Assembly: GCA_044892505.1 (NCBI GenBank)
Contig: CM097884.1
Span: forward strand, 91,202,001-91,266,000
From: Schmidtea nova
Taxonomy: Eukaryota
DNA length: 64,000 bases
Direction of reading: 5' to 3'
A program made the position numbers and the translations under genes. The notes below the pieces were generated by a model. It saw only the letters and a program-made list of their open reading frames with translations. It searched no databases and was not told the origin of the DNA. Shown here piece after piece: positions 3 through 64,000 of this stretch (positions are counted from its first letter, which is position 1; each line of letters starts with the position of its first letter).

Positions 3-3000
3 CCAACTAGACCAGGAGCTACAACAACTACAACTAGACGAACAACGACTCTGAAACCATGTGCCGTGAAACTCGTCATCAAAGATAAGCAATTGACAGG
101 AATTACAGTGACACCAAAGATTTCCAAGAGTGATGTTAAAAAGTTGAGACCTGATTGGAAACATCCAAAACAAGGTGTTGAGTTCAAACGTGGAAAACAC
201 ACAATTGTTGTCAAGATCGTCAAAGGCACTCACCAAAAGAAACCAAACAGAATCACAGCAGCCGGTTTGAAAGTAGTCAATGTCAATCCAGGCGACAAAT
301 TGAGCAAATACTTCAAGTCAGTTACAATTGTAATTACGAAACAAAAGTTCACAAGAGGTGGCAAACGAAAGACTGTCAAGAAAACGATTAAAGTCCCATT
401 GAAAACAATTGTTGACGATTTGAGAAATGTGTTGAGAAAACGACATCATTATGTGAAGAAAGTGACATTCAAATTTGAAGTGACGAAAGTTGTTAAAGTG
501 AAATTGGTTGTGAAAGGCTGTGTTGACAAAGTACCGACGCCACCAACATTGCGTCCAACAACTAAATCTACTCCAACTAGACCAGGAGCTACAACAACTA
601 CAACTAGACGAACAACGACTCTGAAACCATGTGCCGTGAAACTCGTCATCAAAGATAAGCAATTGACAGGAATTACAGTGACACCAAAGATTTCCAAGAG
701 TGATGTTAAAAAGTTGAGACCTGATTGGAAACATCCAAAACAAGGTGTTGAGTTCAAACGTGGAAAACACACAATTGTTGTCAAGATCGTCAAAGGCACT
801 CACCAAAAGAAACCAAACAGAATCACAGCAGCCGGTTTGAAAGTAGTCAATGTCAATCCAGGCGACAAATTGAGCAAATACTTCAAGTCAGTTACAATTG
901 TAATTACGAAACAAAAGTTCACAAGAGGTGGCAAACGAAAGACTGTCAAGAAAACGATTAAAGTCCCATTGAAAACAATTGTTGACGATTTGAGAAATGT
1001 GTTGAGAAAACCACATCATTATGTGAAGAAAGTGACATTCAAATTTGAAGTGACAAAAGTTGTTAAAGTGAAATTGGTTGTGAAAGGCTGTGTTGACAAA
1101 GTACCGACGCCACCAACATTGCGTCCAACAACTAAATCTACTCCAACTAGACCAGGAGCTACAACAACTACAACTAGACGAACAACGACTCTGAAACCAT
1201 GTGCCGTGAAACTCGTCATCAAAGATAAGCAATTGACAGGAATTACAGTGACACCAAAGATTTCCAAGAGTGATGTTAAAAAGTTGAGACCTGATTGGAA
1301 ACATCCAAAACAAGGTGTTGAGTTCAAACGTGGAAAACACACAATTGTTGTCAAGATCGTCAAAGGCACTCACCAAAAGAAACCAAACAGAATCACAGCA
1401 GCCGGTTTGAAAGTAGTCAATGTCAATCCAGGCGACAAATTGAGCAAATACTTCAAGTCAGTTACAATTGTAATTACGAAACAAAAGTTCACAAGAGGTG
1501 GCAAACGAAAGACTGTCAAGAAAACGATTAAAGTCCCATTGAAAACAATTGTTGACGATTTGAGAAATGTGTTGAGAAAACCACATCATTATGTGAAGAA
1601 AGTGACATTCAAATTTGAAGTGACGAAAGTTGTTAAAGTGAAATTGGTTGTGAAAGGCTGTGTTGACAAAGTACCGACGCCACCAACATTGCGTCCAACA
1701 ACTAAATCTACTCCAACTAGACCAGGAGCTACAACAACTACAACTAGACGAACAACGACTCTGAAACCATGTGCCGTGAAACTCGTCATCAAAGATAAGC
1801 AATTGACAGGAATTACAGTGACACCAAAGATTTCCAAGAGTGATGTTAAAAAGTTGAGACCTGATTGGAAACATCCAAAACAAGGTGTTGAGTTCAAACG
1901 TGGAAAACACACAATTGTTGTCAAGATCGTCAAAGGCACTCACCAAAAGAAACCAAACAGAATCACAGCAGCCGGTTTGAAAGTAGTCAATGTCAATCCA
2001 GGCGACAAATTGAGCAAATACTTCAAGTCAGTTACAATTGTAATTACGAAACAAAAGTTCACAAGAGGTGGCAAACGAAAGACTGTCAAGAAAACGATTA
2101 AAGTCCCATTGAAAACAATTGTTGACGATTTGAGAAATGTGTTGAGAAAACCACATCATTATGTGAAGAAAGTGACATTCAAATTTGAAGTGACAAAAGT
2201 TGTTAAAGTGAAATTGGTTGTGAAAGGCTGTGTTGACAAAGTACCGACGCCACCAACATTGCGTCCAACAACTAAATCTACTCCAACTAGACCAGGAGCT
2301 ACAACAACTACAACTAGACGAACAACGACTCTGAAACCATGTGCCGTGAAACTCGTCATCAAAGATAAGCAATTGACAGGAATTACAGTGACACCAAAGA
2401 TTTCCAAGAGTGATGTTAAAAAGTTGAGACCTGATTGGAAACATCCAAAACAAGGTGTTGAGTTCAAACGTGGAAAACACACAATTGTTGTCAAGATCGT
2501 CAAAGGCACTCACCAAAAGAAACCAAACAGAATCACAGCAGCCGGTTTGAAAGTAGTCAATGTCAATCCAGGCGACAAATTGAGCAAATACTTCAAGTCA
2601 GTTACAATTGTAATTACGAAACAAAAGTTCACAAGAGGTGGCAAACGAAAGACTGTCAAGAAAACGATTAAAGTCCCATTGAAAACAATTGTTGACGATT
2701 TGAGAAATGTGTTGAGAAAACCACATCATTATGTGAAGAAAGTGACATTCAAATTTGAAGTGACGAAAGTTGTTAAAGTGAAATTGGTTGTGAAAGGCTG
2801 TGTTGACAAAGTACCGACGCCACCAACATTGCGTCCAACAACTAAATCTACTCCAACTAGACCAGGAGCTACAACAACTACAACTAGACGAACAACGACT
2901 CTGAAACCATGTGCCGTGAAACTCGTCATCAAAGATAAGCAATTGACAGGAATTACAGTGACACCAAAGATTTCCAAGAGTGATGTTAAAAAGTTGAGAC

Positions 3001-18000: not shown

Positions 18001-21000
18001 TAATTACGAAACAAAAGTTCACAAGAGGTGGCAAACGAAAGACTGTCAAGAAAACGATTAAAGTCCCATTGAAAACAATTGTTGACGATTTGAGAAATGT
18101 GTTGAGAAAACCACATCATTATGTGAAGAAAGTGACATTCAAATTTGAAGTGACGAAAGTTGTTAAAGTGAAATTGGTTGTGAAAGGCTGTGTTGACAAA
18201 GTACCGACGCCACCAACATTGCGTCCAACAACTAAATCTACTCCAACTAGACCAGGAGCTACAACAACTACAACTAGACGAACAACGACTCTGAAACCAT
18301 GTGCCGTGAAACTCGTCATCAAAGATAAGCAATTGACAGGAATTACAGTGACACCAAAGATTTCCAAGAGTGATGTTAAAAAGTTGAGACCTGATTGGAA
18401 ACATCCAAAACAAGGTGTTGAGTTCAAACGTGGAAAACACACAATTGTTGTCAAGATCGTCAAAGGCACTCACCAAAAGAAACCAAACAGAATCACAGCA
18501 GCCGGTTTGAAAGTAGTCAATGTCAATCCAGGCGACAAATTGAGCAAATACTTCAAGTCAGTTACAATTGTAATTACGAAACAAAAGTTCACAAGAGGTG
18601 GCAAACGAAAGACTGTCAAGAAAACGATTAAAGTCCCATTGAAAACAATTGTTGACGATTTGAGAAATGTGTTGAGAAAACCACATCATTATGTGAAGAA
18701 AGTGACATTCAAATTTGAAGTGACGAAAGTTGTTAAAGTGAATTTGGTTGTGAAAGGCTGTGTTGACAAAGTACCGACGCCACCAACATTGCGTCCAACA
18801 ACTAAATCTACTCCAACTAGACCAGGAGCTACAACAACTACAACTAGACGAACAACGACTCTGAAACCATGTGCCGTGAAACTCGTCATCAAAGATAAGC
18901 AATTGACAGGAATTACAGTGACACCAAAGATTTCCAAGAGTGATGTTAAAAAGTTGAGACCTGATTGGAAACATCCAAAACAAGGTGTTGAGTTCAAACG
19001 TGGAAAACACACAATTGTTGTCAAGATCGTCAAAGGCACTCACCAAAAGAAACCAAACAGAATCACAGCAGCCGGTTTGCAAGTAGTCAATGTCAATCCA
19101 GGCGACAAATTGAGCAAATACTTCAAGTCAGTTACAATTGTAATTACGAAACAAAAGTTCACAAGAGGTGGCAAACGAAAGACTTTCAAGAAAACGATTA
19201 AAGTCCCATTGAAAACAATTGTTGACGATTTGAAAAACGTTTTGAGAAAACCACATCATTATGTGAAGAAAGTGACAATCAAATTTGAAGTGACGAAAGT
19301 TGTTAAAGTGAAATTGGTTGTGAAAGGCTGTGTTGACAAAGTACCGACGCCACCAACATTGCGTCCAACAACTAAATCTACTCCAACTAGACCAGGAGCT
19401 ACAACAACTACAACTAGACGAACAACGACTCTGAAACCATGTGCCGTGAAACTCGTCATCAAAGATAAGCAATTGACAGGAATTACAGTGACACCAAAGA
19501 TTTCCAAGAGTGATGTTAAAAAGTTGAGACCTGATTGGAAACATCCAAAACAAGGTGTTGAGTTCAAACGTGGAAAACACACAATTGTTGTCAAGATCGT
19601 CAAAGGCACTCACCAAAAGAAACCAAACAGAATCACAGCAGCCGGTTTGCAAGTAGTCAATGTCAATCCAGGCGACAAATTGAGCAAATACTTCAAGTCA
19701 GTTACAATTGTAATTACGAAACAAAAGTTCACAAGAGGTGGCAAACGAAAGACTGTCAAGAAAACGATTAAAGTCCCATTGAAAACAATTGTTGACGATT
19801 TGAAAAACGTTTTGAGAAAACCACATCATTATGTGAAGAAAGTGACAATCAAATTTGAAGTGACGAAAGTTGTTAAAGTGAAATTGGTTGTGAAAGGCTG
19901 TGTTGACAAAGTACCGACGCCACCAACATTGCGTCCAACAACTAAATCTACTCCAACTAGACCAGGAGCTACAACAACTACAACTAGACGAACAACGACT
20001 CTGAAACCATGTGCCGTGAAACTCATCATCAAAGATAAGCAATTGACAGGAATTACAGTGACACCAAAGATTTCCAAGAGTGATGTTAAAAAGTTGAGAC
20101 CTGATTGGAAACATCCAAAACAAGGTGTTGAGTTCAAACGTGGAAAACACACAATTGTTGTCAAGATCGTCAAAGGCACTCACCAAAAGAAACCAAACAG
20201 AATCACAGCAGCCGGTTTGAAAGTAGTCAATGTCAATCCAGGCGACAAATTGAGCAAATACTTCAAGTCAGTTACAATTGTAATTACGAAACAAAAGTTC
20301 ACAAGAGGTGGCAAACGAAAGACTGTCAAGAAAACGATTAAAGTCCCATTGAAAACAATTGTTGACGATTTGAGAAATGTGTTGAGAAAACCACATCATT
20401 ATGTGAAGAAAGTGACATTCAAATTTGAAGTGACGAAAGTTGTTAAAGTGAAATTGGTTGTGAAAGGCTGTGTTGACAAAGTACCGACGCCACCAACATT
20501 GCGTCCAACAACTAAATCTACTCCAACTAGACCAGGAGCTACAACAACTACAACTAGACGAACAACGACTCTGAAACCATGTGCCGTGAAACTCGTCATC
20601 AAAGATAAGCAATTGACAGGAATTACAGTGACACCAAAGATTTCCAAGAGTGATGTTAAAAAGTTGAGACCTGATTGGAAACATCCAAAACAAGGTGTTG
20701 AGTTCAAACGTGGAAAACACACAATTGTTGTCAAGATCGTCAAAGGCACTCACCAAAAGAAACCAAACAGAATCACAGCAGCCGGTTTGAAAGTAGTCAA
20801 TGTCAATCCAGGCGACAAATTGAGCAAATACTTCAAGTCAGTTACAATTGTAATTACGAAACAAAAGTTCACAAGAGGTGGCAAACGAAAGACTGTCAAG
20901 AAAACGATTAAAGTCCCATTGAAAACAATTTTTGACGATTTGAAAAACGTTTTGAGAAAACCACATCATTATGTGAAGAAAGTGACAATCAAATTTGAAG

Positions 21001-24000
21001 TGACGAAAGTTGTTAAAGTGAAATTGGTTGTGAAAGGCTGTGTTGACAAAGTACCGACGCCGCCAACATTGCGTCCAACAACTAAATCTACTCCAACTAG
21101 ACCAGGAGCTACAACAACTACAACTAGACGAACAACGACTCTGAAACCATGTGCCGTGAAACTCGTCATCAAAGATAAGCAATTGACAGGAATTACAGTG
21201 ACACCAAAGATTTCCAAGAGTGATGTTAAAAAGTTGAGACCTGATTGGAAACATCCAAAACAAGGTGTTGAGTTCAAACGTGGAAAACACACAATTGTTG
21301 TCAAGATCGTCAAAGGCACTCACCAAAAGAAACCAAACAGAATCACAGCAGCCGGTTTGAAAGTAGTCAATGTCAATCCAGGCGACAAATTGAGCAAATA
21401 CTTCAAGTCAGTTACAATTGTAATTACGAAACAAAAGTTCACAAGAGGTGGCAAACGAAAGACTGTCAAGAAAACGATTAAAGTCCCATTGAAAACAATT
21501 TTTGACGATTTGAAAAACGTTTTGAGAAAACCACATCATTATGTGAAGAAAGTGACAATCAAATTTGAAGTGACGAAAGTTGTTAAAGTGAAATTGGTTG
21601 TGAAAGGCTGTGTTGACAAAGTACCGACGCCGCCAACATTGCGTCCAACAACTAAATCTACTCCAACTAGACCAGGAGCTACAACAACTACAACTAGACG
21701 AACAACGACTCTGAAACCATGTGCCGTGAAACTCGTCATCAAAGATAAGCAATTGACAGGAATTACAGTGACACCAAAGATTTCCAAGAGTGATGTTAAA
21801 AAGTTGAGACCTGATTGGAAACATCCAAAACAAGGTGTTGAGTTCAAACGTGGAAAACACACAATTGTTGTCAAGATCGTCAAAGGCACTCACCAAAAGA
21901 AACCAAACAGAATCACAGCAGCCGGTTTGAAAGTAGTCAATGTCAATCCAGGCGACAAATTGAGCAAATACTTCAAGTCAGTTACAATTGTAATTACGAA
22001 ACAAAAGTTCACAAGAGGTGGCAAACGAAAGACTGTCAAGAAAACGATTAAAGTCCCATTGAAAACAATTGTTGACGATTTGAGAAATGTGTTGAGAAAA
22101 CCACATCATTATGTGAAGAAAGTGACATTCAAATTTGAAGTGACGAAAGTTGTTAAAGTGAAATTGGTTGTGAAAGGCTGTGTTGACAAAGTACCGACGC
22201 CACCAACATTGCGTCCAACAACTAAATCTACTCCAACTAGACCAGGAGCTACAACAACTACAACTAGACGAACAACGACTCTGAAACCATGTGCCGTGAA
22301 ACTCGTCATCAAAGATAAGCAATTGACAGGAATTACAGTGACACCAAAGATTTCCAAGAGTGATGTTAAAAAGTTGAGACCTGATTGGAAACATCCAAAA
22401 CAAGGTGTTGAGTTCAAACGTGGAAAACACACAATTGTTGTCAAGATCGTCAAAGGCACTCACCAAAAGAAACCAAACAGAATCACAGCAGCCGGTTTGA
22501 AAGTAGTCAATGTCAATCCAGGCGACAAATTGAGCAAATACTTCAAGTCAGTTACAATTGTAATTACGAAACAAAAGTTCACAAGAGGTGGCAAACGAAA
22601 GACTGTCAAGAAAACGATTAAAGTCCCATTGAAAACAATTGTTGACGATTTGAAAAACGTTTTGAGAAAACCACATCATTATGTGAAGAAAGTGACAATC
22701 AAATTTGAAGTGACGAAAGTTGTTAAAGTGAAATTGGTTGTGAAAGGCTGTGTTGACAAAGTACCGACGCCACCAACATTGCGTCCAACAACTAAATCTA
22801 CTCCAACTAGACCAGGAGCTACAACAACTACAACTAGACGAACAACGACTCTGAAACCATGTGCCGTGAAACTCGTCATCAAAGATAAGCAATTGACAGG
22901 AATTACAGTGACACCAAAGATTTCCAAGAGTGATGTTAAAAAGTTGAGACCTGATTGGAAACATCCAAAACAAGGTGTTGAGTTCAAACGTGGAAAACAC
23001 ACAATTGTTGTCAAGATCGTCAAAGGCACTCACCAAAAGAAACCAAACAGAATCACAGCAGCCGGTTTGCAAGTAGTCAATGTCAATCCAGGCGACAAAT
23101 TGAGCAAATACTTCAAGTCAGTTACAATTGTAATTACGAAACAAAAGTTCACAAGAGGTGGCAAACGAAAGACTGTCAAGAAAACGATTAAAGTCCCATT
23201 GAAAACAATTGTTTACGATTTGAAAAACGTTTTGAGAAAACCACATCATTATGTGAAGAAAGTGACAATCAAATTTGAAGTGACGAAAGTTGTTAAAGTG
23301 AAATTGGTTGTGAAAGGCTGTGTTGACAAAGTACCGACGCCACCAACATTGCGTCCAACAACTAAATCTACTCCAACTAGACCAGGAGCTACAACAACTA
23401 CAACTAGACGAACAACGACTCTGAAACCATGTGCCGTGAAACTCGTCATCAAAGATAAGCAATTGACAGGAATTACAGTGACACCAAAGATTTCCAAGAG
23501 TGATGTTAAAAAGTTGAGACCTGATTGGAAACATCCAAAACAAGGTGTTGAGTTCAAACGTGGAAAACACACAATTGTTGTCAAGATCGTCAAAGGCACT
23601 CACCAAAAGAAACCAAACAGAATCACAGCAGCCGGTTTGAAAGTAGTCAATGTCAATCCAGGCGACAAATTGAGCAAATACTTCAAGTCAGTTACAATTG
23701 TAATTACGAAACAAAAGTTCACAAGAGGTGGCAAACGAAAGACTGTCAAGAAAACGATTAAAGTCCCATTGAAAACAATTGTTGACGATTTGAGAAATGT
23801 GTTGAGAAAACCACATCATTATGTGAAGAAAGTGACATTCAAATTTGAAGTGACGAAAGTTGTTAAAGTGAAATTGGTTGTGAAAGGCTGTGTTGACAAA
23901 GTACCGACGCCACCAACATTGCGTCCAACAACTAAATCTACTCCAACTAGACCAGGAGCTACAACAACTACAACTAGACGAACAACGACTCTGAAACCAT

Positions 24001-27000
24001 GTGCCGTGAAACTCGTCATCAAAGATAAGCAATTGACAGGAATTACAGTGACACCAAAGATTTCCAAGAGTGATGTTAAAAAGTTGAGACCTGATTGGAA
24101 ACATCCAAAACAAGGTGTTGAGTTCAAACGTGGAAAACACACAATTGTTGTCAAGATCGTCAAAGGCACTCACCAAAAGAAACCAAACAGAATCACAGCA
24201 GCCGGTTTGAAAGTAGTCAATGTCAATCCAGGCGACAAATTGAGCAAATACTTCAAGTCAGTTACAATTGTAATTACGAAACAAAAGTTCACAAGAGGTG
24301 GCAAACGAAAGACTGTCAAGAAAACGATTAAAGTCCCATTGAAAACAATTGTTGACGATTTGAAAAACGTTTTGAGAAAACCACATCATTATGTGAAGAA
24401 AGTGACAATCAAATTTGAAGTGACGAAAGTTGTTAAAGTGAAATTGGTTGTGAAAGGCTGTGTTGACAAAGTACCGACGCCACCAACATTGCGTCCAACA
24501 ACTAAATCTACTCCAACTAGACCAGGAGCTACAACAACTACAACTAGACGAACAACGACTCTGAAACCATGTGCCGTGAAACTCGTCATCAAAGATAAGC
24601 AATTGACAGGAATTACAGTGACACCAAAGATTTCCAAGAGTGATGTTAAAAAGTTGAGACCTGATTGGAAACATCCAAAACAAGGTGTTGAGTTCAAACG
24701 TGGAAAACACACAATTGTTGTCAAGATCGTCAAAGGCACTCACCAAAAGAAACCAAACAGAATCACAGCAGCCGGTTTGCAAGTAGTCAATGTCAATCCA
24801 GGCGACAAATTGAGCAAATACTTCAAGTCAGTTACAATTGTAATTACGAAACAAAAGTTCACAAGAGGTGGCAAACGAAAGACTGTCAAGAAAACGATTA
24901 AAGTCCCATTGAAAACAATTGTTGACGATTTGAAAAACGTTTTGAGAAAACCACATCATTATGTGAAGAAAGTGACAATCAAATTTGAAGTGACGAAAGT
25001 TGTTAAAGTGAAATTGGTTGTGAAAGGCTGTGTTGACAAAGTACCGACGCCGCCAACATTGCGTCCAACAACTAAATCTACTCCAACTAGACCAGGAGCT
25101 ACAACAAATACAACTAGACGAACAACGACTCTGAAACCATGTGCCGTGAAACTCGTCATCAAAGATAAGCAATTGACAGGAATTACAGTGACACCAAAGA
25201 TTTCCAAGAGTGATGTTAAAAAGTTGAGACCTGATTGGAAACATCCAAAACAAGGTGTTGAGTTCAAACGTGGAAAACACACAATTGTTGTCAAGATCGT
25301 CAAAGGCACTCACCAAAAGAAACCAAACAGAATCACAGCAGCCGGTTTGAAAGCAGTCAATGTCAATCCAGGCGACAAATTGAGCAAATACTTCAAGTCA
25401 GTTACAATTGTAATTACGAAACAAAAGTTCACAAGAGGTGGCAAACGAAAGACTGTCAAGAAAACGATTAAAGTCCCATTGAAAACAATTTTTGACGATT
25501 TGAAAAACGTTTTGAGAAAACCACATCATTATGTGAAGAAAGTGACAATCCAATTTGAAGTGACGAAAGTTGTTAAAGTGAAATTGGTTGTGAAAGGCTG
25601 TGTTGACAAAGTACCGACGCCGCCAACATTGCGTCCAACAACTAAATCTACTCCAACTAGACCAGGAGCTACAACAACTACAACTAGACGAACAACGACT
25701 CTGAAACCATGTGCCGTGAAACTCGTCATCAAAGATAAGCAATTGACAGGAATTACAGTGACACCAAAGATTTCCAAGAGTGATGTTAAAAAGTTGAGAC
25801 CTGATTGGAAACATCCAAAACAAGGTGTTGAGTTCAAACGTGGAAAACACACAATTGTTGTCAAGATCGTCAAAGGCACTCACCAAAAGAAACCAAACAG
25901 AATCACAGCAGCCGGTTTGAAAGTAGTCAATGTCAATCCAGGCGACAAATTGAGCAAATACTTCAAGTCAGTTACAATTGTAATTACGAAACAAAAGTTC
26001 ACAAGAGGTGGCAAACGAAAGACTGTCAAGAAAACGATTAAAGTCCCATTGAAAACAATTGTTGACGATTTGAGAAATGTGTTGAGAAAACCACATCATT
26101 ATGTGAAGAAAGTGACATTCAAATTTGAAGTGACGAAAGTTGTTAAAGTGAAATTGGTTGTGAAAGGCTGTGTTGACAAAGTACCGACGCCACCAACATT
26201 GCGTCCAACAACTAAATCTACTCCAACTAGACCAGGAGCTACAACAACTACAACTAGACGAACAACGACTCTGAAACCATGTGCCGTGAAACTCGTCATC
26301 AAAGATAAGCAATTGACAGGAATTACAGTGACACCAAAGATTTCCAAGAGTGATGTTAAAAAGTTGAGACCTGATTGGAAACATCCAAAACAAGGTGTTG
26401 AGTTCAAACGTGGAAAACACACAATTGTTGTCAAGATCGTCAAAGGCACTCACCAAAAGAAACCAAACAGAATCACAGCAGCCGGTTTGCAAGTAGTCAA
26501 TGTCAATCCAGGCGACAAATTGAGCAAATACTTCAAGTCAGTTACAATTGTAATTACGAAACAAAAGTTCACAAGAGGTGGCAAACGAAAGACTGTCAAG
26601 AAAACGATTAAAGTCCCATTGAAAACAATTGTTGACGATTTGAAAAACGTTTTGAGAAAACCACATCATTATGTGAAGAAAGTGACAATCAAATTTGAAG
26701 TGACGAAAGTTGTTAAAGTGAAATTGGTTGTGAAAGGCTGTGTTGACAAAGTACCGACGCCACCAACATTGCGTCCAACAACTAAATCTACTCCAACTAG
26801 ACCAGGAGCTACAACAACTACAACTAGACGAACAACGACTCTGAAACCATGTGCCGTGAAACTCGTCATCAAAGATAAGCAATTGACAGGAATTACAGTG
26901 ACACCAAAGATTTCCAAGAGTGATGTTAAAAAGTTGAGACCTGATTGGAAACATCCAAAACAAGGTGTTGAGTTCAAACGTGGAAAACACACAATTGTTG

Positions 27001-30000
27001 TCAAGATCGTCAAAGGCACTCACCAAAAGAAACCAAACAGAATCACAGCAGCCGGTTTGAAAGTAGTCAATGTCAATCCAGGCGACAAATTGAGCAAATA
27101 CTTCAAGTCAGTTACAATTGTAATTACGAAACAAAAGTTCACAAGAGGTGGCAAACGAAAGACTGTCAAGAAAACGATTAAAGTCCCATTGAAAACAATT
27201 GTTGACGATTTGAGAAATGTGTTGAGAAAACCACATCATTATGTGAAGAAAGTGACATTCAAATTTGAAGTGACGAAAGTTGTTAAAGTGAAATTGGTTG
27301 TGAAAGGCTGTGTTGACAAAGTACCGACGCCACCAACATTGCGTCCAACAACTAAATCTACTCCAACTAGACCAGGAGCTACAACAACTACAACTAGACG
27401 AACAACGACTCTGAAACCATGTGCCGTGAAACTCGTCATCAAAGATAAGCAATTGACAGGAATTACAGTGACACCAAAGATTTCCAAGAGTGATGTTAAA
27501 AAGTTGAGACCTGATTGGAAACATCCAAAACAAGGTGTTGAGTTCAAACGTGGAAAACACACAATTGTTGTCAAGATCGTCAAAGGCACTCACCAAAAGA
27601 AACCAAACAGAATCACAGCAGCCGGTTTGAAAGTAGTCAATGTCAATCCAGGCGACAAATTGAGCAAATACTTCAAGTCAGTTACAATTGTAATTACGAA
27701 ACAAAAGTTCACAAGAGGTGGCAAACGAAAGACTGTCAAGAAAACGATTAAAGTCCCATTGAAAACAATTTTTGACGATTTGAAAAACGTTTTGAGAAAA
27801 CCACATCATTATGTGAAGAAAGTGACAATCAAATTTGAAGTGACGAAAGTTGTTAAAGTGAAATTGGTTGTGAAAGGCTGTGTTGACAAAGTACCGACGC
27901 CGCCAACATTGCGTCCAACAACTAAATCTACTCCAACTAGACCAGGAGCTACAACAACTACAACTAGACGAACAACGACTCTGAAACCATGTGCCGTGAA
28001 ACTCGTCATCAAAGATAAGCAATTGACAGGAATTACAGTGACACCAAAGATTTCCAAGAGTGATGTTAAAAAGTTGAGACCTGATTGGAAACATCCAAAA
28101 CAAGGTGTTGAGTTCAAACGTGGAAAACACACAATTGTTGTCAAGATCGTCAAAGGCACTCACCAAAAGAAACCAAACAGAATCACAGCAGCCGGTTTGA
28201 AAGTAGTCAATGTCAATCCAGGCGACAAATTGAGCAAATACTTCAAGTCAGTTACAATTGTAATTACGAAACAAAAGTTCACAAGAGGTGGCAAACGAAA
28301 GACTGTCAAGAAAACGATTAAAGTCCCATTGAAAACAATTTTTGACGATTTGAAAAACGTTTTGAGAAAACCACATCATTATGTGAAGAAAGTGACAATC
28401 AAATTTGAAGTGACGAAAGTTGTTAAAGTGAAATTGGTTGTGAAAGGCTGTGTTGACAAAGTACCGACGCCGCCAACATTGCGTCCAACAACTAAATCTA
28501 CTCCAACTAGACCAGGAGCTACAACAACTACAACTAGACGAACAACGACTCTGAAACCATGTGCCGTGAAACTCGTCATCAAAGATAAGCAATTGACAGG
28601 AATTACAGTGACACCAAAGATTTCCAAGAGTGATGTTAAAAAGTTGAGACCTGATTGGAAACATCCAAAACAAGGTGTTGAGTTCAAACGTGGAAAACAC
28701 ACAATTGTTGTCAAGATCGTCAAAGGCACTCACCAAAAGAAACCAAACAGAATCACAGCAGCCGGTTTGAAAGTAGTCAATGTCAATCCAGGCGACAAAT
28801 TGAGCAAATACTTCAAGTCAGTTACAATTGTAATTACGAAACAAAAGTTCACAAGAGGTGGCAAACGAAAGACTGTCAAGAAAACGATTAAAGTCCCATT
28901 GAAAACAATTGTTGACGATTTGAGAAATGTGTTGAGAAAACCACATCATTATGTGAAGAAAGTGACATTCAAATTTGAAGTGACGAAAGTTGTTAAAGTG
29001 AAATTGGTTGTGAAAGGCTGTGTTGACAAAGTACCGACGCCACCAACATTGCGTCCAACAACTAAATCTACTCCAACTAGACCAGGAGCTACAACAACTA
29101 CAACTAGACGAACAACGACTCTGAAACCATGTGCCGTGAAACTCGTCATCAAAGATAAGCAATTGACAGGAATTACAGTGACACCAAAGATTTCCAAGAG
29201 TGATGTTAAAAAGTTGAGACCTGATTGGAAACATCCAAAACAAGGTGTTGAGTTCAAACGTGGAAAACACACAATTGTTGTCAAGATCGTCAAAGGCACT
29301 CACCAAAAGAAACCAAACAGAATCACAGCAGCCGGTTTGAAAGTAGTCAATGTCAATCCAGGCGACAAATTGAGCAAATACTTCAAGTCAGTTACAATTG
29401 TAATTACGAAACAAAAGTTCACAAGAGGTGGCAAACGAAAGACTGTCAAGAAAACGATTAAAGTCCCATTGAAAACAATTGTTGACGATTTGAAAAACGT
29501 TTTGAGAAAACCACATCATTATGTGAAGAAAGTGACAATCAAATTTGAAGTGACGAAAGTTGTTAAAGTGAAATTGGTTGTGAAAGGCTGTGTTGACAAA
29601 GTACCGACGCCACCAACATTGCGTCCAACAACTAAATCTACTCCAACTAGACCAGGAGCTACAACAACTACAACTAGACGAACAACGACTCTGAAACCAT
29701 GTGCCGTGAAACTCGTCATCAAAGATAAGCAATTGACAGGAATTACAGTGACACCAAAGATTTCCAAGAGTGATGTTAAAAAGTTGAGACCTGATTGGAA
29801 ACATCCAAAACAAGGTGTTGAGTTCAAACGTGGAAAACACACAATTGTTGTCAAGATCGTCAAAGGCACTCACCAAAAGAAACCAAACAGAATCACAGCA
29901 GCCGGTTTGCAAGTAGTCAATGTCAATCCAGGCGACAAATTGAGCAAATACTTCAAGTCAGTTACAATTGTAATTACGAAACAAAAGTTCACAAGAGGTG

Positions 30001-33000
30001 GCAAACGAAAGACTGTCAAGAAAACGATTAAAGTCCCATTGAAAACAATTGTTTACGATTTGAAAAACGTTTTGAGAAAACCACATCATTATGTGAAGAA
30101 AGTGACAATCAAATTTGAAGTGACGAAAGTTGTTAAAGTGAAATTGGTTGTGAAAGGCTGTGTTGACAAAGTACCGACGCCACCAACATTGCGTCCAACA
30201 ACTAAATCTACTCCAACTAGACCAGGAGCTACAACAACTACAACTAGACGAACAACGACTCTGAAACCATGTGCCGTGAAACTCGTCATCAAAGATAAGC
30301 AATTGACAGGAATTACAGTGACACCAAAGATTTCCAAGAGTGATGTTAAAAAGTTGAGACCTGATTGGAAACATCCAAAACAAGGTGTTGAGTTCAAACG
30401 TGGAAAACACACAATTGTTGTCAAGATCGTCAAAGGCACTCACCAAAAGAAACCAAACAGAATCACAGCAGCCGGTTTGAAAGTAGTCAATGTCAATCCA
30501 GGCGACAAATTGAGCAAATACTTCAAGTCAGTTACAATTGTAATTACGAAACAAAAGTTCACAAGAGGTGGCAAACGAAAGACTGTCAAGAAAACGATTA
30601 AAGTCCCATTGAAAACAATTGTTGACGATTTGAGAAATGTGTTGAGAAAACCACATCATTATGTGAAGAAAGTGACATTCAAATTTGAAGTGACGAAAGT
30701 TGTTAAAGTGAAATTGGTTGTGAAAGGCTGTGTTGACAAAGTACCGACGCCACCAACATTGCGTCCAACAACTAAATCTACTCCAACTAGACCAGGAGCT
30801 ACAACAACTACAACTAGACGAACAACGACTCTGAAACCATGTGCCGTGAAACTCGTCATCAAAGATAAGCAATTGACAGGAATTACAGTGACACCAAAGA
30901 TTTCCAAGAGTGATGTTAAAAAGTTGAGACCTGATTGGAAACATCCAAAACAAGGTGTTGAGTTCAAACGTGGAAAACACACAATTGTTGTCAAGATCGT
31001 CAAAGGCACTCACCAAAAGAAACCAAACAGAATCACAGCAGCCGGTTTGAAAGTAGTCAATGTCAATCCAGGCGACAAATTGAGCAAATACTTCAAGTCA
31101 GTTACAATTGTAATTACGAAACAAAAGTTCACAAGAGGTGGCAAACGAAAGACTGTCAAGAAAACGATTAAAGTCCCATTGAAAACAATTGTTGACGATT
31201 TGAAAAACGTTTTGAGAAAACCACATCATTATGTGAAGAAAGTGACAATCAAATTTGAAGTGACGAAAGTTGTTAAAGTGAAATTGGTTGTGAAAGGCTG
31301 TGTTGACAAAGTACCGACGCCACCAACATTGCGTCCAACAACTAAATCTACTCCAACTAGACCAGGAGCTACAACAACTACAACTAGACGAACAACGACT
31401 CTGAAACCATGTGCCGTGAAACTCGTCATCAAAGATAAGCAATTGACAGGAATTACAGTGACACCAAAGATTTCCAAGAGTGATGTTAAAAAGTTGAGAC
31501 CTGATTGGAAACATCCAAAACAAGGTGTTGAGTTCAAACGTGGAAAACACACAATTGTTGTCAAGATCGTCAAAGGCACTCACCAAAAGAAACCAAACAG
31601 AATCACAGCAGCCGGTTTGCAAGTAGTCAATGTCAATCCAGGCGACAAATTGAGCAAATACTTCAAGTCAGTTACAATTGTAATTACGAAACAAAAGTTC
31701 ACAAGAGGTGGCAAACGAAAGACTGTCAAGAAAACGATTAAAGTCCCATTGAAAACAATTGTTGACGATTTGAAAAACGTTTTGAGAAAACCACATCATT
31801 ATGTGAAGAAAGTGACAATCAAATTTGAAGTGACGAAAGTTGTTAAAGTGAAATTGGTTGTGAAAGGCTGTGTTGACAAAGTACCGACGCCGCCAACATT
31901 GCGTCCAACAACTAAATCTACTCCAACTAGACCAGGAGCTACAACAACTACAACTAGACGAACAACGACTCTGAAACCATGTGCCGTGAAACTCGTCATC
32001 AAAGATAAGCAATTGACAGGAATTACAGTGACACCAAAGATTTCCAAGAGTGATGTTAAAAAGTTGAGACCTGATTGGAAACATCCAAAACAAGGTGTTG
32101 AGTTCAAACGTGGAAAACACACAATTGTTGTCAAGATCGTCAAAGGCACTCACCAAAAGAAACCAAACAGAATCACAGCAGCCGGTTTGAAAGTAGTCAA
32201 TGTCAATCCAGGCGACAAATTGAGCAAATACTTCAAGTCAGTTACAATTGTAATTACGAAACAAAAGTTCACAAGAGGTGGCAAACGAAAGACTGTCAAG
32301 AAAACGATTAAAGTCCCATTGAAAACAATTTTTGACGATTTGAAAAACGTTTTGAGAAAACCACATCATTATGTGAAGAAAGTGACAATCAAATTTGAAG
32401 TGACGAAAGTTGTTAAAGTGAAATTGGTTGTGAAAGGCTGTGTTGACAAAGTACCGACGCCGCCAACATTGCGTCCAACAACTAAATCTACTCCAACTAG
32501 ACCAGGAGCTACAACAACTACAACTAGACGAACAACGACTCTGAAACCATGTGCCGTGAAACTCGTCATCAAAGATAAGCAATTGACAGGAATTACAGTG
32601 ACACCAAAGATTTCCAAGAGTGATGTTAAAAAGTTGAGACCTGATTGGAAACATCCAAAACAAGGTGTTGAGTTCAAACGTGGAAAACACACAATTGTTG
32701 TCAAGATCGTCAAAGGCACTCACCAAAAGAAACCAAACAGAATCACAGCAGCCGGTTTGAAAGTAGTCAATGTCAATCCAGGCGACAAATTGAGCAAATA
32801 CTTCAAGTCAGTTACAATTGTAATTACGAAACAAAAGTTCACAAGAGGTGGCAAACGAAAGACTGTCAAGAAAACGATTAAAGTCCCATTGAAAACAATT
32901 GTTGACGATTTGAGAAATGTGTTGAGAAAACCACATCATTATGTGAAGAAAGTGACATTCAAATTTGAAGTGACGAAAGTTGTTAAAGTGAAATTGGTTG

Positions 33001-36000
33001 TGAAAGGCTGTGTTGACAAAGTACCGACGCCACCAACATTGCGTCCAACAACTAAATCTACTCCAACTAGACCAGGAGCTACAACAACTACAACTAGACG
33101 AACAACGACTCTGAAACCATGTGCCGTGAAACTCGTCATCAAAGATAAGCAATTGACAGGAATTACAGTGACACCAAAGATTTCCAAGAGTGATGTTAAA
33201 AAGTTGAGACCTGATTGGAAACATCCAAAACAAGGTGTTGAGTTCAAACGTGGAAAACACACAATTGTTGTCAAGATCGTCAAAGGCACTCACCAAAAGA
33301 AACCAAACAGAATCACAGCAGCCGGTTTGCAAGTAGTCAATGTCAATCCAGGCGACAAATTGAGCAAATACTTCAAGTCAGTTACAATTGTAATTACGAA
33401 ACAAAAGTTCACAAGAGGTGGCAAACGAAAGACTGTCAAGAAAACGATTAAAGTCCCATTGAAAACAATTGTTGACGATTTGAAAAACGTTTTGAGAAAA
33501 CCACATCATTATGTGAAGAAAGTGACAATCAAATTTGAAGTGACGAAAGTTGTTAAAGTGAAATTGGTTGTGAAAGGCTGTGTTGACAAAGTACCGACGC
33601 CACCAACATTGCGTCCAACAACTAAATCTACTCCAACTAGACCAGGAGCTACAACAACTACAACTAGACGAACAACGACTCTGAAACCATGTGCCGTGAA
33701 ACTCGTCATCAAAGATAAGCAATTGACAGGAATTACAGTGACACCAAAGATTTCCAAGAGTGATGTTAAAAAGTTGAGACCTGATTGGAAACATCCAAAA
33801 CAAGGTGTTGAGTTCAAACGTGGAAAACACACAATTGTTGTCAAGATCGTCAAAGGCACTCACCAAAAGAAACCAAACAGAATCACAGCAGCCGGTTTGC
33901 AAGTAGTCAATGTCAATCCAGGCGACAAATTGAGCAAATACTTCAAGTCAGTTACAATTGTAATTACGAAACAAAAGTTCACAAGAGGTGGCAAACGAAA
34001 GACTGTCAAGAAAACGATTAAAGTCCCATTGAAAACAATTGTTGACGATTTGAAAAACGTTTTGAGAAAACCACATCATTATGTGAAGAAAGTGACAATC
34101 AAATTTGAAGTGACGAAAGTTGTTAAAGTGAAATTGGTTGTGAAAGGCTGTGTTGACAAAGTACCGACGCCGCCAACATTGCGTCCAACAACTAAATCTA
34201 CTCCAACTAGACCAGGAGCTACAACAAATACAACTAGACGAACAACGACTCTGACACCATGTGCCGTGAAACTCGTCATCAAAGATAAGCAATTGACAGG
34301 AATTACAGTGACACCAAAGATTTCCAAGAGTGATGTTAAAAAGTTGAGACCTGATTGGAAACATCCAAAACAAGGTGTTGAGTTCAAACGTGGAAAACAC
34401 ACAATTGTTGTCAAGATCGTCAAAGGCACTCACCAAAAGAAACCAAACAGAATCACAGCAGCCGGTTTGAAAGTAGTCAATGTCAATCCAGGCGACAAAT
34501 TGAGCAAATACTTCAAGTCAGTTACAATTGTAATTACGAAACAAAAGTTCACAAGAGGTGGCAAACGAAAGACTGTCAAGAAAACGATTAAAGTCCCATT
34601 GAAAACAATTTTTGACGATTTGAAAAACGTTTTGAGAAAACCACATCATTATGTGAAGAAAGTGACAATCCAATTTGAAGTGACGAAAGTTGTTAAAGTG
34701 AAATTGGTTGTGAAAGGCTGTGTTGACAAAGTACCGACGCCGCCAACATTGCGTCCAACAACTAAATCTACTCCAACTAGACCAGGAGCTACAACAACTA
34801 CAACTAGACGAACAACGACTCTGAAACCATGTGCCGTGAAACTCGTCATCAAAGATAAGCAATTGACAGGAATTACAGTGACACCAAAGATTTCCAAGAG
34901 TGATGTTAAAAAGTTGAGACCTGATTGGAAACATCCAAAACAAGGTGTTGAGTTCAAACGTGGAAAACACACAATTGTTGTCAAGATCGTCAAAGGCACT
35001 CACCAAAAGAAACCAAACAGAATCACAGCAGCCGGTTTGAAAGTAGTCAATGTCAATCCAGGCGACAAATTGAGCAAATACTTCAAGTCAGTTACAATTG
35101 TAATTACGAAACAAAAGTTCACAAGAGGTGGCAAACGAAAGACTGTCAAGAAAACGATTAAAGTCCCATTGAAAACAATTGTTGACGATTTGAGAAATGT
35201 GTTGAGAAAACCACATCATTATGTGAAGAAAGTGACATTCAAATTTGAAGTGACGAAAGTTGTTAAAGTGAAATTGGTTGTGAAAGGCTGTGTTGACAAA
35301 GTACCGACGCCACCAACATTGCGTCCAACAACTAAATCTACTCCAACTAGACCAGGAGCTACAACAACTACAACTAGACGAACAACGACTCTGAAACCAT
35401 GTGCCGTGAAACTCGTCATCAAAGATAAGCAATTGACAGGAATTACAGTGACACCAAAGATTTCCAAGAGTGATGTTAAAAAGTTGAGACCTGATTGGAA
35501 ACATCCAAAACAAGGTGTTGAGTTCAAACGTGGAAAACACACAATTGTTGTCAAGATCGTCAAAGGCACTCACCAAAAGAAACCAAACAGAATCACAGCA
35601 GCCGGTTTGCAAGTAGTCAATGTCAATCCAGGCGACAAATTGAGCAAATACTTCAAGTCAGTTACAATTGTAATTACGAAACAAAAGTTCACAAGAGGTG
35701 GCAAACGAAAGACTGTCAAGAAAACGATTAAAGTCCCATTGAAAACAATTGTTGACGATTTGAAAAACGTTTTGAGAAAACCACATCATTATGTGAAGAA
35801 AGTGACAATCAAATTTGAAGTGACGAAAGTTGTTAAAGTGAAATTGGTTGTGAAAGGCTGTGTTGACAAAGTACCGACGCCACCAACATTGCGTCCAACA
35901 ACTAAATCTACTCCAACTAGACCAGGAGCTACAACAACTACAACTAGACGAACAACGACTCTGAAACCATGTGCCGTGAAACTCGTCATCAAAGATAAGC

Positions 36001-63998: not shown

Positions 63999-64000
63999 AA

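Follow-up and report, generated by a model that had tools for sequence, protein, structure and literature searches.

A tandem array of more than one hundred polycationic beads inside a single coding exon of Schmidtea nova, with a candidate role as an ap2-like planarian adhesive

Introduction

The temporary glues of flatworms are models for reversible wet adhesives, and their surface-binding component, flatworm adhesion protein 2 (ap2), is known only as giant repeats without a known fold. Here we analyse a window of 64,000 nucleotides from Schmidtea nova (GenBank assembly GCA_044892505.1, contig CM097884.1, positions 91,202,001 to 91,266,000 of the forward strand; all positions below count from the first letter of this stretch), which holds a tandem array of coding units for a lysine-rich bead-and-linker protein whose closest published analogue appears to be ap2. 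An original prediction, made from the letters of the DNA, had read the array as an extremely basic, divergent discoidin (FA58C) domain repeated 112 times and had proposed that it forms a multivalent polycation of the kind used in a glue or slime.

In the duo-gland temporary adhesive, ap2 is the protein that binds the surface (PMC9229212, PMC6745481). Tmed-ap2 is 7,228 residues long, contains 22.5% lysine, is built of tandem repeats of 230 and 330 residues with predicted O-glycosylation, and its depletion by RNA interference (RNAi) yields non-adhesive animals (PMC9229212). The 14,794-residue Mlig-ap2, two thirds of which is a repetitive core, is glycosylated and left behind in footprints, and Mile-ap2 has at least 12 repeats, which lie in an exon 15 kb or more in length (PMC9229212, PMC6745481). 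The sequence of the repeat units is not conserved between flatworm orders (PMC6745481). In the current model of adhesion, a membrane protein of the anchor cells uses its lysine-binding kringle domains to hold a Lys-rich secreted component, and a secreted polyanion frees the bond; heparin abolishes attachment (PMC9229212, PMC6745481).

The marginal adhesive gland of S. mediterranea combines viscid gland cells positive for mag-1 with anchor cells positive for ifb. Plasminogen-1 (plg1) is expressed in the anchor-cell cluster, and its knockdown by RNAi produces drifting, poorly adhering animals (PMC8602322). The presence of plg1 in anchor cells (PMC8602322) fits the kringle–lysine model proposed for Theama (PMC9229212). 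Our literature search for a published planarian ap2 found none among the papers listed.

Results

One open reading frame runs through 112 head-to-tail units

The window has a G+C content of 39%, uniform along its length, contains no N and is strongly A-rich on the plus strand. Its autocorrelation reaches 0.994 at a lag of 570 and lies between 0.25 and 0.34 at the other lags tested; this measure was used in place of Tandem Repeats Finder, which missed the array because the 570-bp period exceeds its maximum of 500. Alignment of the units showed 112 complete head-to-tail copies on the plus strand (positions 1–63,840), each exactly 570 bp or 190 amino acids long, followed by a partial unit that closes the window at position 64,000, and the predicted 112-fold repetition was thus confirmed. 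A search of four units against Rfam returned no match.

With 570 equal to 3 x 190, the unit period keeps the codon register, and one open reading frame, 21,332 codons in length, extends over positions 3–63,998 of the plus strand with neither intron nor stop, while the remaining five frames contain between 112 and 2,693 stops each. The frame is still open where the window starts and where it stops, and the window is thus an internal part of a larger coding exon. The portion of the protein encoded here has a mass of 2.39 MDa and an isoelectric point (pI) of 11.0. When the unit was shuffled, any open circular frame was found in only 3 of 20,000 shuffles.

The copies are near-identical but ordered without periodicity

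The units are about 99.4% identical, with a mean difference of about 3 in 570 positions, and the 112 copies comprise 22 versions at the DNA level and 14 at the protein level, with 21 variable columns and no indels. The variants within the array (6 synonymous and 15 non-synonymous) look near neutral, and the order of the 22 versions along the array is non-periodic. A block of 12 units (6,840 bp) is present as two adjacent in-frame copies on the plus strand (positions 19,951–26,790 and 26,791–33,630), which differ at 4 of 6,840 positions, compared with a median of 39 mismatches at that lag.

Variation between units peaks at positions 411–471 of the plus strand in unit 1 (unit residues 137–157), which cover a predicted short helix and the strand that follows it. 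Two tightly linked unit types are found here, R141/F156 in 65 copies and K141/I156 in 47, and synonymous changes at columns 428 and 431 go with each type; nearly all of the first ~32 units are of the former type, and further along the two interleave. At columns 424, 428 and 431 the K141/I156 type carries the bases seen in related organisms (described below), which suggests either an old polymorphism or gene conversion.

Each unit is a two-cysteine domain followed by a short threonine- and proline-rich linker

The unit divides into a domain and a linker, both recurring every 570 bp on the plus strand. In unit 1 the domain occupies positions 60–521, the span that the original prediction had singled out, and comprises exactly the 154 residues from Cys20 to Cys173; it is predicted to be ß-rich, with 7–8 strands and two short helices. 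These two cysteines, the only ones in the unit, are present without change in every one of the 112 copies. The domain accounts for 81% of the unit and has 35 Lys, 25 Val and 8 Arg against 8 Asp/Glu, giving a net charge of +35. The linker that separates consecutive domains (first at positions 522–629) has 36 residues with a net charge of +6, of which 14 are Thr, 1 is Ser (15 Ser/Thr altogether) and 7 are Pro. No N-glycosylation sequon was found in these 36 residues, and the composition makes the linker a candidate site of mucin-type O-glycosylation.

The predicted composition held up closely. The majority unit has 38 Lys (20%), 11 Arg, 5 His, 9 acidic residues (7 Asp and 2 Glu) and 27 Val, besides 2 Tyr, with a pI of about 11; unit 1 alone has a twelfth arginine, R147. 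The net charge, anticipated to be near +40 per unit and about +4,500 over the window, was computed as +40 or +41 and +4,470, and the protein of the window as a whole consists of 20.1% lysine (~4,300 residues), 14.8% threonine and 14.1% valine. The alternation of valine with lysine, which had been taken as a sign of amphipathic strands, is visible as runs within the predicted strands, but over the whole domain the hydrophobic/polar alternation does not rise above composition (917 of 5,000 shuffles reach it).

The unit is transcribed and conserved in related organisms

Public sequencing runs contain one organism with a near-identical unit and at least three further organisms, from separate studies, that carry the unit at ~93% identity in libraries of the complementary DNA (cDNA) type. 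One contig of 488 nucleotides from a poly(A) RNA-seq library wraps round the unit (joint 574 to 5), and the 570-bp period is therefore common to this relative. In the contigs of the relatives, template-switch-oligo sequence directly precedes the match and poly(A) runs directly follow it, on the plus strand, which is the arrangement expected of cDNA from sense-strand RNA.

Junctions of this kind lie inside the unit, with template-switch-oligo sequence or poly(A) runs at internal positions 83, 321, 346 and 427 in the relatives' cDNA libraries. They probably reflect oligo-dT priming on A-rich tracts together with strand switching on very abundant or fragmented RNA, and an array transcript of this kind would be miscounted and fragmented by standard single-cell and short-read pipelines.

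Between the window and the relatives we counted 20 substitutions, 13 synonymous and 7 non-synonymous, corresponding to a ratio of non-synonymous to synonymous change (pN/pS) of ~0.17, and the replacements are mostly conservative (E60D, V73I, V92I and R141K). At nucleotides 230–236 an apparent 1-nt deletion and insertion amount, as we read the contig consensus, to in-frame substitutions that change His77 to Arg. The 112 copies all share one base, and the relatives carry another, at 16 of these 20 sites and at four further ones near codon 77. The substitution pattern indicates that purifying selection acts on the protein sequence between species, and an array that is uniform within a species yet diverged between species points to concerted evolution as the process that keeps the copies nearly identical inside a coding exon. 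The array is a real, selected and transcribed coding sequence.

Read in register with the coding frame, the antisense strand has a single stop per unit (window positions 318–320 and every 570 bp thereafter, minus strand), which leaves 112 open stretches of 189 codons. This stop is the complement of the unit's sole TCA serine codon; related organisms have TCC at the site, so that their antisense frame would be wholly open. Nine of the 11 leucine codons in the unit are TTG, and TTA and CTA are absent. The near-open antisense frame looks like a by-product of codon choice, and an antisense gene was rejected, since the substitution pattern between species favours the sense frame.

The domain is probably a ß sandwich that may belong to the galactose-binding type

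The fold of the domain was approached by profile search and by structure prediction. Using hmmscan against Pfam-A (E<=10), neither one unit, nor the domain alone, nor three units matched PF00754, the F5/8 type C family in which the original prediction had placed the domain. Matches of the three-unit query to Cypovirus_WIV, ACT-like, Spc25 and PDDEXK_10 all fell below the curated cut-offs and were discarded as noise. In the form applied here, the FA58C_1 and FA58C_2 PROSITE-type patterns did not match the unit either, in which only their final hydrophobic-x-G-C part is present.

An AlphaFold model built from one sequence had too low a confidence (predicted local distance difference test, pLDDT, 42.8) to be of use, and its C2-like matches and Foldseek list were not taken as evidence. 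A second run, for which the alignment consisted of the 14 protein variants of the unit, gave a best model with a pLDDT of 61.7 and a predicted template-modelling score (pTM) of 0.63, composed of 7–8 strands and two short helices and poorly defined at residues 12–39. When this model was aligned without prefilter to 48,161 PDB representatives, the top 50 were nearly all galactose-binding-domain-like jelly rolls, including the C-terminal modules of GH29 fucosidases. The alignments cover the whole domain (residues 1–158 against whole CBM32 modules) at an identity of 6–12%, with DOC/APC10 domains scoring just as high. Queried with the same model, Foldseek and the ESM Atlas gave weak matches only. 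The first and last strands of the model adjoin Cys20 and Cys173, which is compatible with a terminal disulfide, though a model is not a measurement of one.

Members of the F5/8 type C/discoidin family fold as distorted jelly rolls of eight strands and bind anionic lipids, heparin or glycans. The array domain resembles them, and bacterial CBM32, in its length of ~150 residues and, as in eukaryotic discoidin domains, in the single cysteine at each end, and differs from them in matching neither profile nor motif and in occurring in more than 100 tandem copies, where known proteins of the family carry one to a few. We know of no member of the family with a net charge comparable to +35 per domain. 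Judging from the models, the domain is probably a folded ß sandwich, for which a jelly roll of the discoidin/CBM32/DOC type is at present the likeliest candidate, with a chance of about one half. The predicted FA58C identity thus persists as a reasonable but unproven assignment of fold, carried by the length, the terminal cysteines and the jelly-roll-like best model, while membership by descent is unproven and the tests at the level of sequence failed. The structure-based check proposed for it came out divided: the best model matches galactose-binding-like jelly rolls, but the other models are of lower confidence (pLDDT 43–53) and the Foldseek matches are weak.

Discussion

Because each domain has a pair of cysteines, the spacers are Thr/Pro-rich like those of mucins and the exon is giant, we infer that the array encodes a secreted, O-glycosylated polymer of the beads-on-a-string type. 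By analogy with ap2, its most likely role, to which we give an even chance, would be that of a substrate-binding glue in the planarian temporary adhesive, built of polycationic bead-linker units. The original prediction of a polycationic polymer for a glue or slime stands insofar as a giant polycationic bead-spacer protein is real and ap2-type glues make the role plausible (PMC9229212, PMC6745481), but its secretion, glycosylation and polyanion binding are properties that we infer.

The likeness to ap2 lies in the giant size, the extended core of tandem repeats, each a few hundred residues in length, the very large exon, and a composition in which the share of lysine is similar (22.5% in Tmed-ap2 and 20.1% in the array) and both proteins are Thr-rich with predicted O-glycosylation; the compositional hallmarks of ap2, a giant protein of long tandem repeats rich in lysine and threonine, are all present. 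In both cases the repeat sequence is specific to its flatworm group. Against this, the array has at least 112 far more uniform copies where ap2 has 12–20, the 21,332 residues seen in the window already exceed Mlig-ap2 (14,794), and the unit is a discrete two-cysteine domain with a short linker. The search of 1.84 billion representatives brought up no similarity of sequence between the two, and the signal peptide and C-terminal TSP1/TIL domains are the ends that define ap2, whereas the window covers the interior of the repeats.

Two further groups of proteins invite comparison. The Lys-rich bioadhesives of marine animals, such as sea-star Sfp1, mussel foot proteins and sandcastle-worm cement, are secreted polycations that adhere under water through contacts of lysine with surfaces or polyanions, and Sfp1 contains discoidin domains; these proteins are much smaller than the array protein, often act with 3,4-dihydroxyphenylalanine (DOPA) or phosphoserine partners, and are not made of more than 100 identical folded beads. 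Mucins in which SEA or CysD domains are set between proline/threonine/serine (PTS) tracts have in common with the predicted array protein their small disulfide-containing domains, the Thr/Pro-rich O-glycosylated spacers that alternate with them and the giant exon, but in the array the bead predominates (81%), the spacer has 36 residues and the polymer is strongly basic.

How such a polymer might work can be outlined from these analogies. Each domain would be a small ß sandwich of the galactose-binding-domain-like type (discoidin/CBM32/DOC), which the models support moderately, with a Cys20–Cys173 disulfide that would pin its ends together, Val, Ile, Leu and Phe facing inward and the lysines outside. 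The spacers, O-glycosylated and stiff, would extend the chain into a micrometre-scale polymer bearing thousands of positive charges, which could be stored with counter-ions in gland granules. Once released, the polymer would stick to negatively charged substrates and glycans by multivalent lysine contacts; lysine-binding kringle proteins on the anchor cells might grip it, and a secreted polyanion would let it go. With ~4,300 lysines displayed on rigid beads, it may, again by analogy, be a natural ligand both for the kringle system and for negatively charged natural surfaces.

A number of observations weigh against the reading as an ap2-like glue of discoidin-type beads. The window lies entirely inside the array, so that any signal peptide, the ends of the gene and any C-terminal TSP1/TIL module would fall outside it, and mucus glands, rhabdites or cement glands are possible sources of the protein. 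The RNA runs were seen as contigs and speak for presence in cDNA-type libraries, not for transcript length or expression level. Heparin-binding consensus (Cardin–Weintraub) motifs are not enriched beyond composition. The fold depends on one model, whose confidence is moderate, the remaining four of its run lying at pLDDT 43–53, and a charge–hydropathy plot places the domain just across the boundary to disorder (H 0.455, boundary 0.493), so that its stability may depend on counter-ions or polyanions. Finally, no match was returned by sequence (phmmer) and profile searches of the PDB at E<=10, by a full HMMER search of 1.84 billion cluster representatives at E<=0.001, by a word search of 5.8 billion proteins or by a scan of JGI metagenomes; the HMMER and word searches gave no match to an ap2 protein, the presence of ap2 proteins in these libraries not being established. 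A search of the ESM Atlas by features likewise gave no usable match, nor did a full-text search of the literature for peptide and DNA strings of the unit. The ~93% identical orthologue known from read data is also absent from these protein libraries, and the blank searches therefore point to a gap in the libraries and are no evidence that the domain is unique to one species.

A first alternative concerns the fold only and is compatible with either function. The repeat might have a fold not seen before or that of some other ß sandwich, such as a C2-like one, or it might be a chain which is unfolded by itself and becomes ordered only on binding a polyanion, the resemblance to FA58C being a coincidence of length and terminal cysteines. 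The silence of PF00754 at E<=10, the lack of relatives in the sequence searches and the unmatched FA58C patterns are what such a repeat would show, as are the C2-like appearance of the first AlphaFold model (pLDDT 42.8), the spread in confidence among the five models of the second run (43–62) and the charge–hydropathy position. It accounts less well for the better model (pTM 0.63), whose matches are galactose-binding-like jelly rolls almost without exception and span the whole domain, as would be unusual for a random ß sandwich, and for a length of 154 residues with paired terminal cysteines, which fits eukaryotic discoidin domains. We hold a non-discoidin repeat to be a substantial possibility, if somewhat short of even.

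The main competing function assigns the identical molecule another job, as a basic protein that gives structure to the mucus used in gliding or defence, to rhabdites or to cocoon cement, where it would complex acidic mucopolysaccharides or act as an antimicrobial polycation in place of serving as the glue of the marginal adhesive gland. A giant polycationic bead-and-linker protein fits this role equally well, and rhabdites and some planarian glands are stained by acid dyes, a sign of basic proteins. Set against it, the nearest published builds, in size, a lysine content of ~20%, Thr-rich glycosylated repeats and a giant exon, are the ap2 proteins of adhesive glands (PMC9229212, PMC6745481), and typical gel-forming mucins are acidic, with PTS tracts far longer than 36 residues. 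We consider a mucus, rhabdite or cement protein unlikely, if deserving of attention. We consider it very improbable that the array is satellite DNA without coding function, or an artefact of assembly, and open in one frame by chance: near-identical units do reduce the long reading frame to one 190-codon observation repeated, the variants inside the array look neutral and the in-register antisense frame carries just one stop per unit, but shuffling very rarely gives an open frame (3 in 20,000), the third codon positions of the sense frame hold most of the changes between species (13 of 20 synonymous; pN/pS 0.17), the poly(A) and template-switch cDNA libraries of other organisms carry the unit in sense orientation, and the non-periodic order of the 22 variants together with the 12-unit duplication argues for a real long-read structure, neither collapsed nor inflated.

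Returning to the ap2-like glue, its boldest form would have one exon, more than 110 kb long and reaching past the window, encode more than 190 identical discoidin-type beads, all polycationic, in a protein of ~38,000 residues or more, larger than titin and the largest known in any animal, that serves as a substrate glue held by kringles and released by a polyanion; in this combination we regard it as doubtful.

Among flatworm adhesive proteins of the ap2 type and among mucins, the array is unusual in scale, regularity and charge, and it is a striking instance of concerted evolution in a coding exon. It offers a clean and very regular case, in which one small domain of about +35 is present in more than 100 copies on spacers predicted to be glycosylated, and this regularity makes a single recombinant bead a workable object for tests of fold, of polyanion and surface binding, and of coacervation. 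If the array does continue uninterrupted well beyond the window, the protein would be a candidate for one of the largest in any animal and, if the reading as a discoidin-type glue is true, the array would provide the first fold and mechanism for the ap2 repeats of flatworms.

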